NCBI GenBank assembly: GCA_051294905.1
Contig: CM119376.1
Coordinates: 23,870,001 to 23,934,000, forward strand
Source: Botryllus schlosseri
Lineage: Eukaryota
Length of the DNA stretch: 64,000 nucleotides
Direction of reading: 5' to 3'
In this document: positions 31,325 through 37,181 of the stretch, in pieces
Numbering within the stretch: the stretch's first letter is position 1
Layout of the letters: the number at the start of each line of letters is the position of its first letter
Position numbers and translations under genes: made by a program
The notes under the pieces: model-generated
The model's database searches: none
What the model was told of the DNA's origin: nothing
What the model saw: only the letters and a program-made list of their open reading frames with translations

Positions 31325-34300
31325 ATGGCAGCTGCAACGTACGTTGGTCAGTGGAGACCCCATCGCCCACGTGGCCCCATCGGAGCCCATTTCAAATCTC
31401 CAGGACCAAAGTACATGCTTCCGGGTTCAACAGGTGAACATTAGTTGAATGCGCACCACAAACCATATTATCAGAGGTGCTCAGTAAAGAAGTACTTCTA
31501 TTATTTTGGAGTATTCAAGTAGCCTTTGACTATGACTTAATCAAGTGAATATGTCTTCAGACTACGTCCAATTCTAAGTAACGGTTTTGAAGCAAAACTA
31601 TTTTGCATTTTTCAAGTGGAAGCTATTTTTTCATAGGTTTGCATTACTTTGTCCATTCTGGTGGATGTTTTATGGATTATATTTACAATTGCTATTTTCT
31701 ATTTTTGCATTGTCTCACGATTGCTGTGGCATTTCGAATTGATGAAATTGCTAATAAATTATTGATTCTAGTTGTATCTGTTTGTGTGATTAGAAATAGA
31801 GATAAAAGAAATCTTATTATGTCACAACTTGATAATTGTCACTATTCTTAATGGTTTGATTATAGTTTTATTGTTATTATGTTGTGTGTATCAGGCAATT
31901 CATCAACTTCACACTTTTGTGTCTTCGACTGTAGGCCTATAGCTTATAAGGGAAACAAATGTTATTTTTATTGACGGCCTTACGTTGTATTCTAGGTTAT
32001 CGGGGTCATGACTTACGAAAGAGACAGGCAGCTTCATACAGTTTTGGTACAAGACACGCAAAATTTACGAACGATGACAGCCCTGGGCCAGGTGGATACC
32101 TAGTCCCTGCACGAATCACACGTACTGGCAATGATGGAACCCCCAAATACTCGCTCTATAGCAGACCAAGAGACGTCGCAGCATTCAAAAACCCTGGTCC
32201 AGGTAATGTGGTGCGTTTGCTTATCGTTCGTTTCATAAGGTAATTGTCGATATACACAGGAGCATACAGCCCTGAAAAAAGTGGACGTTCTGCCTACAGA
32301 TCTGCACCAATTTATTCATTAGCTAGCAGAACTAAAGGTCACAAAACAGATAACAGTCCAGGTATGTATGCTAGTAATCGGTCGATTGTATCTTGAATGC
32401 TCGTAATGCTATTTTAAATATATATACATGGGAAAGTAAATCTGACTTCTGAGTTGTCCTAAATGAATAATATTTGGAGGATTATTGTGACTGTGGCATA
32501 AGGTGTGAAGGAGCATTTTGAATAGCGATGAAAACTTTTGGTCTCCAATGTATTGAATTTAATATTTTCAGAAATGTCTATATATGTCATATCAGTCAAC
32601 TTGAGAAATGTCGCAGCCCCACGTTTTCCCCAATTAATTAACCCTTCCTCCACACAAATGACTGATACAGGTCCGGCTGCATACATGTTGCCCCAAGTTT
32701 TGGGGCCTCACTCCGTGGGCAAAGCGTCCTTGCCAGCATATACTTTGACGGCTCGGAGAAGCTATGGCTCATTTCATGATGATTTACAGCGGGTTTGTTG
32801 AAAGTTTGAACGTGACAAAATCAGGGTGTCATGTGTGCCGTGGGCTAACCTCACCAAAGCGATACATGTCATCAATCATATCGTGTCATCGAATTTGTGT
32901 GCTTCTTAAAAATTGCCTCCTAACACAAACACACTTGCTTTGTTATCTATCATAACCATCTATCCTTTGCCTTGGCATAATGAGTGTGGCAAACAATTAT
33001 TGGCGCGTTGTAGGCTACTATATTTTGTGTGTGACTGAAAATAAAATTGCTTACTTGAACTGGATTTTTGCTCCAGTCCAACTAATTAAGTACGGTAACT
33101 AACAAATTGAAAATAGTTTAATATTATCTCTATCTACAATTCCCATGTTCAACATTGACCAGGAATATTACTCTCAATCCGCCTTTAGTATTTTCTATAT
33201 ACTGGTATATTTTTATGCCAATTGCATGTGATCATCGTTATGACTTGGTCTGTGAATGGTTATGCTACCAACGAGAGTCTATGACTCTTATAGTCTGATT
33301 ATGGTCTAAAGACATTATTTTGGTTGTTGCTAATATGCAATTATACACCTTTTTGAAAGCGACATCAATATTTGCATCACCTTATCGACATTACACACAC
33401 AGGCTGGCAGAGCACTCTGCATTTTTTCATCTCAGTTTGACGCATTAATTATTAAATGAAGGTTTCATTGGAACTTTCAGTCGAATTTCATGCCGCTACT
33501 AGAATGTGTCAATATTTATTTCTATACACTCAAATAGGACCTGCCGCTTACGGATTCCCTAAGCTCCCTGGGTTGAACATGGTCAACTCAAGGTCCGCAC
33601 CATCATACTCCATTAGTGGCCGCAACAACGCTGGCAGTTTTTCAGAGGACCTATCACGGGTGACGATTGCCGAACGTACAGCATGAAAGCTAGCGCGAAC
33701 CAAAATCTGATTTTAAAAATTCCACTCGGGATTTAATTTGTAGTTTCGTAACAATCGAGTCAATGCCTGCACATATTACTCTTGCTCGAAGTAGAGCTAT
33801 ATTTTTTTGACAGTAGGATATCTCGAAATATGGAGCTTATTTATCGCCGGGCATATATGATGTTGCCAGACAGACTTGGATTGTGACACCTATAAGGGAT
33901 CATAAAGAAGCAGATAGATATACATATCCAAAAAATAATCAGAAACCAGATCGAAAAATCAATTGACTATCTCCATGCTTGCGACAGAGAGAATTGCTAA
34001 CTGTGCTCTTGTACTTGCTAATGCACATACAATAGTAGAGATTCTTGGACATACATACAATACCCATGACCCAAATTTTGAGTGGCGTTTCAAGATGGTA
34101 GGAAAGCAAACAGATGTTAGTACAGTATTGCCTGATGCGGTTTACCTTACAACATTTTCATGATACTCAGGGAAGTATGAAAGGAGTTAGTATTAAGTGA
34201 ATTTCCTTATTCAAAGCACATTATGTAGCGGAATGTAAATCTAATCTGCATAAATTTTGTCAGGTCCCGCATCTTACTGCTTGCCGTCAATGCTCGGCAA

Positions 34301-37181
34301 CAAGGTGATCTCAACAACATCATCACCTGTATATTCTATGACGGCTAGAGTAACCACAGGCAGCTTCCACGAAGATCTGAGAAAGGTGGCATGTATCAGC
34401 ATTTGTTTGTCAAAGGGTTAAGCGATTAGTCCACAGTTATCAAAACAATTACCACAGGATGGACAGATTTATCATCAATAACCACAAACAATTTTAGACA
34501 AGAGCAGGAAGTGGGTACAAGGGTGAAGAGCTGATAGATGAAGGTTACTAGGCATCAACCAAATCCTTAGCTAATGTGATGAACTGAAAATACTGTGATA
34601 AGTGTATTCTACATGACATCAACACTAAACAGAGTAGAAGGAATTTTGTTTTGCATGTTTTAAATTTGCTTTGGTAACTTCTTATATCACTAATGCTCTT
34701 TTGTGGTTTGGTTTTTACAGTAAGCCATATCATTACAGTGTCTATTGTTTCATCATCTTGGTAACTTTTGCATGCGACTGATGGTAGTGATAAATCAATT
34801 CCACCTTCATATACTTTTCATTGCATGAAGTTGAGCGTCTGATTTCTGCACAGCATGGTGGACTGAGATGGACTAGAATGGAATGTGTCGGTAATCGTTT
34901 TGAAATGAATTGGATGTTATTTGATGCTTGCTTTTAGACACCGGGACCTGGAACGTACCGTGTGGTTGACCCATTTGTTTACAAAGATCGCTCTCCACTA
35001 TACAGCATGACCGGAAGAAACATGTTACCGAGTGACGCAACAAGGAAACCAGGACCCGGAGCGCACAGTCCAGAGAAGGTACTATAGACCTTCAATGAAT
35101 GCAAATTCTATAGACTATCATTTTCAAAGTAATTCGATGTCTGCGTAAGTACTGTCATTACTCATTTACAAGACTTCCGTTTCCTAAGTACAGTGTTAAT
35201 GGCATAGAAATTTTCGATTTTCTACTAGTCAAATGTTACACAAAAGTTTTGAATTCACAAGTTATATGGAAACTTTGGCTCCGTCCCTTTTCTATGACAC
35301 TAACAATATCATCAGACCCATAAAGTCATTGTACAAATGTACCAATAAGAACCCGTTCACAAATTTCCATCTTAATCTCTACCCTACACACTGAATGATC
35401 AATTCTTGGTTGCCAGGTTTTTATCAACAGAAGACAGCCACCACGGCACTCATTCGGTATTAGACACAGTGAATATACAGCGCCGTTGATTGTCAAGACA
35501 GTGGATTAAAGTCAAAGTAGTCAAGAAAGCTGGCCTTGTCGTATGCTCATATTTTATCAGCGAGATATTGAAATGTTTTCATACGGACAAGATGATCGTA
35601 CTCAGAGAGTTTATAAAGAAATATCAATTCACTTGAAGCCTTTGTTTGAAGTATCTTCTTTGTTAGCTCACATAAAAAGTCAACATTAAACTGAGTATTA
35701 GCGAAGACATCACCTTTACTGCTTGAATAAAACACATAAGAGTGGTCATGAAGCTTTTGTATCCAAGGGGAAGGAGAGTATTAGGCAGTATTGACAATAA
35801 TGACAAGCATGGGAGAGGATAATTGTGACAAATCACGTTCCAAAGGGAAAGAAGATACAGGTGACTTTGAATAGCGGAGGTATCTGATCACACAGCGGAC
35901 ACATCACCCGCCTCGAGGATAGGCTGAGTTTTGTCAGTCACAATAGAAGTAACATGTTATTCGTCAGCAAGGCTATAGATATTTGTACATCCATGGAGAG
36001 AGCCCTTGTTTTGCCACAGGCTTTATTAAAACTTTTCTCACTTTGAAACACATGTGCGAAGGCTTCCGTCATGATACATTGGCTACACGGTATCTGTGGA
36101 CACCATTGTGACTCTACAATTTTTTTTTACCACTGAAAATAATTATTTCAACTGCAGACACAAACTAATCCCAGATATATCAATTGCGGAGTTTCGGTTT
36201 CTTTTGCATTTATATCGATTTCATTTTCAGCCATGTGATGGTCAAGTAGCGCTGTTCAATACAGAGCTCTGGATATCTCTAGTTTAATGACAATCAATGG
36301 TTTTTGGAAGGATCATATTTCAAATTAGTCCATCACAAAGTATGTGTTACATATTCAATGGTCTCAAATAATATACCATCAGCTTGTAATCAATTGATAA
36401 TAACAAATGAACTATATAAAGTAGTAAATCAGAAACAAAGTGGAAAGCCAATAGGGTAGCCTTGCAGGTTTTCTGTACTTCCAGTAATAACACAAGTGAT
36501 ATTTTTATACCATTCTGATGCTAGCAGCTTTTGTAACCGAATCATTTTATAAGGCTGCGTATTTAAAATTACATTCGACGTGGGAAGTAGTATTGAAATG
36601 TATTTCTACCCTTTTGTGAATTGTGGTATGTAGGCCTATTATGTTATATAGCCTGTTCCGCAGTCACGGAATAATGTTTCGATATGGTGACATCTTGTGC
36701 TTTTGTAAATGGCACAAACTATTGGCAAACAAAAGCCTGGAACACATACGAAACGACCTTATGAAGCTGCTTACTTCAGTACGGTACTTTTAACACCTAA
36801 TTTTATAGTTATACTTTAAATGGCCTTTGCATCTCGAGCTATAGGCTATGTCATAAAATATTGAGGTTACATTGACTGGTAGTTGATATGATTGAATGTT
36901 TTTGTATAAAACTACTTGGTAGTATATAATTCTATTGAATTTTTAAAATTGTAGCAGAGTAGTATATAATTCTATTGAATTTTTAAAAATTGAAGCAGTA
37001 ACGGCAACCACCGTTCTGTGCAAGTTCCAAATATACAAATAGTAAACTTCTACTAAACTTACCTAACAAATTTATTCATTATTTTAAGGTTTACATGACA
37101 CGAAGATCAGCACCGCAATACTCCTTTGGAATTCTTCATTCTGAATATTTAGCGCCACTTATTGTAGACCCAGAACACTGA
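31325..37181 (+). CDS. ODF3: ODF3/CIMAP1 (SHIPPO-repeat) axonemal protein; exons 31325-31433, 31996-32202, 32260-32361, [32671-32792 | 33538-33659 | 34264-34385], 34938-35078, [35417-35509 | 37089-37181]
   Basis: Translation [28 protein letters not shown], then repeated SPGP(G/A)xY and PxYS motifs, [11 protein letters not shown], and a C-terminal SFGIxHSEYxAPLIV. This is colinear with vertebrate ODF3. Confidence 0.92.

Follow-up and report, generated by a model that had tools for sequence, protein, structure and literature searches.

An ODF3/CIMAP1-like gene of the ascidian Botryllus schlosseri very probably carries its fourth coding exon as a tandem triplicate, with a single copy entering each transcript: two of the copies, here called A and B, are in use, and the third, C, is intact. 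The gene lies on the + strand of a stretch of 64,000 nucleotides (GenBank assembly GCA_051294905.1, contig CM119376.1, positions 23,870,001 to 23,934,000), which we refer to as the window and within which all coordinates below are counted. As defined by open frames and RNA splice joints, the gene comprises five coding exons followed by one of two last exons, L1 or L2, and its product is 257 amino acids (aa) long for every choice of A, B or C with L1 or L2.

The anatomy of the cluster bears out what a first-pass annotation, made from the letters of the window alone, had described: three stop-free exons of 122 nucleotides (nt), each preceded by AG and followed by GT, each running from phase 1 to phase 0 between common flanking exons, were recovered at the same positions and with identical peptides. 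Each exon encodes 41 residues once the G of exon 3 is carried over, and the other two frames contain stops. The three peptides align without gaps at 40–48% identity over 40 aa, with 14 invariant positions, and pairwise BLASTP comparisons (E = 5e-15 for A with C, 3e-12 for B with C) place their paralogy well beyond chance. Scanned with tblastn, the 64-kb window holds exactly three copies, and at the DNA level these are only ~50% identical to one another. All three versions retain the PGPxxY motif as well as the P-x-Y-[ST]...R and GSF-x-[ED]-DL positions; what differs is the spacer between them. Because each exon is 2 mod 3 in length, the presence of zero, two or three copies shifts the frame and introduces an early stop. 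Skipping of all three leads to a stop at codon 149 of 257, and inclusion of AB, AC, BC or ABC leads to stops at codons 192–194, the tandem arrangements meeting theirs within 12–14 codons. The earlier claim that the frame is kept by single inclusion only is correct on this count.

RNA data agree with the frame rule where A and B are concerned. Over positions 31280–37200 we drew on four runs from four studies of Botryllus schlosseri, three of them available as contigs (X1, X10 and X9) and one as raw reads of bulk RNA-seq (X23), with joints listed where at least 3 reads or one contig supported them. Four joints—exon 3 to A, exon 3 to B, A to exon 5 and B to exon 5—are present in 4/4 runs, all of them GT..AG. 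Taken in that order, they are crossed by 27, 11, 14 and 5 reads in X23, and have contig depths of 96, 72, 92 and 82 in X1, of 11, 21, 12 and 21 in X10, and of 67, 55, 67 and 55 in X9. The flanking junctions that had been predicted, 32361 and 34938, are exactly the coordinates that the RNA reads use. A and B are co-expressed in each of the four samples, with a B share of 0.26–0.65 that is by itself no evidence of tissue regulation. At the threshold used, none of the four runs lists a joint from A to B, B to C, A to C, or exon 3 to exon 5; in X23, where 38 reads cross the exon-3 donor, fewer than 3 reads means under ~7%. Since there is neither an A to B joint nor skipping, A and B are mutually exclusive in fact, beyond what the frame imposes. 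The proposal of a mutually exclusive cluster therefore stands for these two exons, found in every run and never together, and falls short for exon C, whose status is weighed below.

The gene is the CIMAP1/ODF3 orthologue in ascidians. Exon 5 matches PF07004, the sperm-tail PG-rich repeat (SHIPPO/STPGR), with 36.7 bits where the cut-off is 20. Among named proteins the closest is a CIMAP1A-like protein of Styela clava, to which the spliced product is 79% identical, and a further messenger RNA (mRNA) contig is 90% identical to the same product. The Styela orthologue in turn matches the ODF3/CIMAP1A/B/C chains in the sperm doublet-microtubule structures 8snb, 8iyj and 8otz (E values from 1e-85 to 1e-34), and homologues are also modelled as ODF3/CIMAP1A-C chains in structures 9cpb and 9fqr. 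Judging from these homologues in solved structures and from published work (PMC10105768, PMC11779644), the product probably binds the outer surface of axonemal doublet microtubules. It contains six PGPxxY/H motifs spaced 36–43 aa apart, and the alternative exon, residues 140–180, corresponds to PG module 4, beginning at the G of its own PG motif and ending just before the next motif. Each alternative exon encodes exactly one PG module, that is, ~40 aa and one of six.

The triplet is not confined to Botryllus schlosseri. A profile search with the three peptides and then two full-length protein searches yielded cluster members for comparison, and among these the RefSeq isoforms of Styela clava, Ciona intestinalis and Clavelina lepadiformis diverge exactly at the alternative-exon segment. 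By their own isoform numbering, which is separate from the run labels above, Styela has the A type in X3, the B type in X4 and the C type in X1 and X2; Ciona has A in X1 and X3, B in X5 and C in X2 and X4; and Clavelina has A in X2, B in X3 and C in X1. The corresponding genomic loci each hold exactly three copies with AG/GT sites in the order A-B-C, measuring 122/122/122 nt in Styela (L003), 122/110/122 nt in Ciona (L004) and 122/104/122 nt in Clavelina (L001); the lengths 104, 110 and 122 nt are all 2 mod 3. The same-type exon is the best match of each window exon in Styela and Ciona, and of A and C in Clavelina. Moreover, uninterrupted contigs of 0.9–1.4 kb from sequencing runs encode full-length proteins, of the C type in L005 and L006 and of the B type in L007, and because these contigs are uninterrupted, both types are present in real spliced mRNAs. 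At least five tunicate data sets other than those of Botryllus schlosseri show the C-type exon in use. All orthologous isoforms are 250–257 aa long and carry a single copy of the segment. As the triplet is common to Styela, Ciona and Clavelina, it is older than the split of these lineages.

Beyond tunicates the picture is simpler. In amphioxus, a hemichordate, two crinoids, abalones and mussels, annotated isoforms differ in the last exon only, for which reason the triplication appears to be specific to tunicates. The single segment of non-tunicates looks like the undivided ancestor, and the earlier statement that human ODF3 has one equivalent segment extends to the non-tunicate orthologues compared here. 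Vertebrate CIMAP1B is A-like in its first half and C-like in its second. A one-to-one match of exon types to vertebrate paralogues (A with CIMAP1A, C with CIMAP1B) was also considered, and is ruled out by this mixed composition.

The age of the duplication is reflected in how the copies differ. Between them, third codon positions are 28–38% identical, no more than expected by chance, compared with 50–68% at positions 1 and 2; with synonymous sites saturated and the protein retained, all three must have been kept as coding since the old duplication. Against the Styela counterparts, dN is 0.11 for A, 0.17 for B, 0.19 for C and 0.08 for exon 5, with pS between 0.66 and 1.0. The pN of exon C (0.17, with pS 0.90) resembles that of B (0.15, with pS 0.66) and is somewhat higher than those of A (0.10) and exon 5 (0.08). 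The strong divergence under long-term purifying selection that had been suggested is thus well founded, resting on third positions at chance level and on pN far below pS.

It is exon C that most tests the interpretation of the locus as a triplet, and several points weigh against it. No joint involves C in any of the four runs, in all of which the gene is well expressed, and its depth in X23 is 0; because 38 reads cross the exon-3 donor, C lies below about 7% in that run. In the contig runs C is covered only by unspliced RNA from a diverged haplotype, in the form of low-depth, genome-colinear contigs whose depth equals that of the flanking intron. Contig-based runs can miss rare isoforms. Parsimony assigns exon C six unambiguous amino acid changes on the Botryllus lineage versus none in Styela, and two of them (GPAAY to GPASY, SAP to SSP) hit positions otherwise invariant across the types, a pattern suggestive of relaxed constraint (p ~0.06 compared with A and B together). 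Indels occur in other haplotypes at 34247–34252, within the pyrimidine tract that immediately precedes C and adjoins its acceptor. Products with zero, two or three copies are assumed to be removed by nonsense-mediated decay, which would be expected because at least one more exon junction follows well downstream of their stops, and a functional effect of the exchange is reasoned from homologues.

Without a C joint in four runs, the cluster may be a two-exon one in this species, effectively a switch between A and B beside a C that was recently silenced and still looks intact; we take this to be a serious alternative, if somewhat short of an even chance. Set against it, C has retained its open frame and AG/GT sites, its pN remains far below its pS, and its type is in use in other tunicates. 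Two variants are shown within C in other haplotypes, at 34280 and 34328, each synonymous and at a third codon position, and the frequency of variant sites (at least 2/122 in C compared with ~34/950, or ~3.6%, plus indels, in the flanking intron) runs in the direction of constraint without reaching significance. A search for the exon C peptide among fragments of 30–96 aa in a set of 5.8 billion proteins returned none, and is uninformative, since no protein of this species, those with A or B included, appeared. By its sequence, exon C is evidently an intact third member maintained by selection; it may be limited to an unsampled tissue or stage, or recently silenced, and we lean slightly toward its being used somewhere in Botryllus schlosseri.

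Two other explanations fare much worse. In a family built of tandem ~40-aa modules, extra modules are plausible in principle, and A, B and C might all be joined in one mRNA through other splice sites to yield a longer protein. The first-pass annotation had named transcripts with several of the exons as something that would count against it; no such joint was found in the four runs, whereas joints from A and from B to exon 5 are abundant, the frame closes soon after a second copy, and orthologous isoforms are uniform in length, each with one copy. Joint inclusion is accordingly very improbable. An assembly artefact, in the form of collapsed or duplicated haplotypes, or chance open reading frames in an intron could be entertained for a heterozygous genome in which RNA contigs are 3–8% off the window in introns, but copies that are this dissimilar in DNA, that each have a separate orthologue, arranged in the same order, in three further genomes, and of which both A and B are expressed make it scarcely credible. 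The preferred interpretation thus remains a tandem triplicate of exon 4 that contributes one copy to each transcript.

How that one copy is chosen can be outlined in part. Exactly one of A, B and C would be spliced between exon 3 and exon 5, with the three exons, each bearing a weak donor, competing for the strong exon-3 donor and the exon-5 acceptor; trans-acting splicing factors would probably act on the weak donors, which read GTTTGT in A, GTGACG in B and GTGGCA in C. Steric exclusion was considered and rejected, since the introns between A and B (745 nt) and between B and C (604 nt) are too long, as was an incompatibility of U2 and U12 sites, since every site is GT-AG with a U2-like donor and none is U12-like. 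The docking and selector complementary sequences that had been proposed for the introns did not materialize in searches for inverted repeats and shared k-mers. The best inverted repeats in 32362–34937 are 15–19 nt long at ~80%, which is chance level, and are not placed exon by exon; no intronic 11-mer or longer is common to at least three of four species, in a comparison of low power given that ascidian introns do not align. Whole-intron duplex energies (z from -1.6 to +1.2) came from a poorly designed and incomplete run, and are uninformative.

The consequences of the choice can be framed by what is known of the family. In a PG-rich protein of Tetrahymena, P-G-P-G-x-Y has been described as the microtubule-binding element and the ~40-residue stretches as 8-nm spacers (PMC10105768); because a module is one tubulin step in that description, the alternative exon would swap one 8-nm step. 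CIMAP1 family members occur in all mammalian motile cilia examined (PMC11779644). In Ciona, ODF3/Shippo1, which may be encoded by the same gene, was detected chiefly in the sperm flagellum and in trace amounts in branchial cilia, in work that did not resolve isoforms (PMC4427456). The switch between sperm and somatic cilia proposed in the first-pass annotation is hypothetical, and A and B are expressed side by side in every sample examined. By retaining the PG motif and altering the spacer, exon choice would change the surface presented at one 8-nm register on the outer face of the doublet, and a protein with six motifs would, at 8 nm each, extrapolate to a span of ~48 nm. It is conceivable, if rather unlikely as a whole, that ascidians use exon choice where vertebrates use paralogues: three versions of module 4 and two last exons would provide up to six isoforms, which might sit in distinct protofilament grooves or distinguish one type of cilium from another (sperm flagellum, branchial, larval or other), each version specifying the docking partner at one register of the 48-nm repeat, with C restricted to sperm or to some other tissue. 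Such a restriction would, within that proposal, account for C being missing from the runs examined.

Features of the ODF3/CIMAP1-like gene, in window coordinates
Feature	Position	Strand	Basis
Exon 1, coding part (ATG start; PG module 1)	31325..31433	+	Open reading frame; joint 31433 to 31996 in 4/4 runs
Exon 2, constitutive	31996..32202	+	Joints in 4/4 runs; weak SHIPPO-rpt match
Exon 3, constitutive; common cluster donor CAG/GTATGT, phase 1 end	32260..32361	+	Joints 32361 to 32671 and 32361 to 33538
Alternative exon A, 122 nt, used	32671..32792	+	Joints to exon 3 and exon 5 in 4/4 runs; A-type orthologues in Styela, Ciona, Clavelina
Alternative exon B, 122 nt, used	33538..33659	+	Joints to exon 3 and exon 5 in 4/4 runs; B type in Styela, Ciona, Clavelina and mRNA contig L007
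Alternative exon C, 122 nt, intact and conserved, no splicing seen in Botryllus schlosseri	34264..34385	+	C-type isoforms or mRNAs in Styela, Ciona, Clavelina, L005, L006
Exon 5, constitutive; common acceptor, phase 0; PG module 5	34938..35078	+	SHIPPO-rpt PF07004, E 6.7e-9, 36.7 bits; joints
Alternative last exon L1, coding part, minor	35417..35509	+	Joint 35078 to 35417 in X1 only, depth 7; translation
Alternative last exon L2, coding part, major	37089..37181	+	Joint 35078 to 37089 in 4/4 runs, 17 reads in X23; translation

The two last exons form a second set of alternatives. L1 and L2 are paralogous to each other, and in X1, the one run in which it is seen, L1 reaches ~3% of the depth of L2. 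A paralogous pair of alternative last exons is annotated at the same position in amphioxus, the hemichordate, the crinoids, abalones, mussels, Styela and Ciona, and being so widely annotated, the pair is either very old or recurrent. As to neighbouring genes, PSMD13 lies just upstream on the opposite strand in Styela (the flanking regions being L003 1-680 and 12296-14236), and an RDD-domain gene lies downstream of the locus in Styela, Ciona and Clavelina, in the last two at the 3' ends of L004 and L001.

The RNA data also contain a number of smaller observations. All four runs have G at 32033 in exon 2, where the reference has T, and T at 33566 in exon B, where the reference has C; both are third codon positions, so that either the reference holds minor alleles or the assembled individual differs. 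Genome-colinear RNA contigs over 33630–34966 differ from the window by ~3–8% in introns, with many indels, which indicates that the genome is very highly heterozygous. RNA that runs unspliced from exon B into exon 5 reaches 13–29% of the depth of the spliced joint between the two in the three contig runs, and is not seen in X23. Two joints are non-canonical: one at 36932-37080 (TA..AT), which leaves out 147 nt in a contig of X1 and probably reflects an allele with an intronic deletion, and one at 35080-37098 (AC..TG), which has 6 extra letters and 4 X23 reads, and is probably an alignment artefact of the joint between exon 5 and L2. Finally, X23 has loose ends at 31435 and 32203, where some reads leave exon 1 or exon 2 for unlike sequence (consensus agreement ~0.7); their source may be a gene paralogous to this one, a divergent allele or another alternative exon.

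In the literature searched, we found no paper on mutually exclusive exons in ODF3/CIMAP1, nor any account of this splicing for ODF3 in Ciona. The remark in the first-pass annotation that no description was known holds in that respect, but needs amending for databases, where the RefSeq isoforms of Styela, Ciona and Clavelina already differ exactly at this segment. The cluster is chiefly of value in drawing attention to a module that matters for function in a ciliary protein of which little is understood. CIMAP1/ODF3 was placed on the outer doublet surface only recently, and its function is poorly understood; that module 4 has been kept in three versions across all three ascidian lineages compared points to this module as the one where diversity matters. 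In Ciona, the exons offer a simple genetic handle on the role of the outer-surface filaments. More broadly, the locus may represent a clean case of tunicate exon duplication doing the work of vertebrate gene duplication.

The nearest known counterparts are the CIMAP1A-like isoforms of Styela (X1-X4), Ciona (X1-X5) and Clavelina (X1-X3), which represent the same gene with the same exon types, A-B-C order and phase. Styela and Ciona share the pair of alternative last exons, and PSMD13 is upstream in Styela as it is in the window. Exon B, 122 nt here, is shorter by 12 nt in Ciona and by 18 nt in Clavelina. The relatives' isoforms are pipeline models, and C is annotated there, in Ciona as the older "canonical" model, whereas it is undetected in RNA here.

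The mechanism itself is of a known kind, since mutually exclusive clusters that arise from tandem exon duplication are well known, Dscam1 and 14-3-3 among them. For instance, insect Mhc (PMC2257972) and exon 5a/5b of SCN-alpha genes (PMC12772994) likewise feature adjacent homologous exons of equal length and the same phase, of which one is included, and which are ancient, conserved and subject to a frame penalty. Unlike clusters of the Dscam type, which use docking and selector sequences, this locus yielded no competing RNA structure. The target is also different: instead of a channel, motor or receptor, the exons described here would vary an 8-nm module of a ciliary microtubule-surface protein. 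The Tetrahymena proteins STPG1A/STPG2 and ODF3L (PMC10105768) are distant homologues only, with no alternative exons reported there, and share the PG motif and the ~40-aa spacers of 8 nm, to be compared with the six motifs 36–43 aa apart in the ascidian product. Vertebrate CIMAP1A/B/C/D (ODF3, ODF3B, ODF3L1 and ODF3L2; 8iyj, 8otz, 9cpb, 9fqr) belong to the same family and have the same module architecture; CIMAP1B resembles the undivided ancestor, and exon types do not pair with paralogues. While vertebrates possess whole-gene paralogues with a single version of the segment in each, ascidians vary one module of one gene by means of alternative exons.

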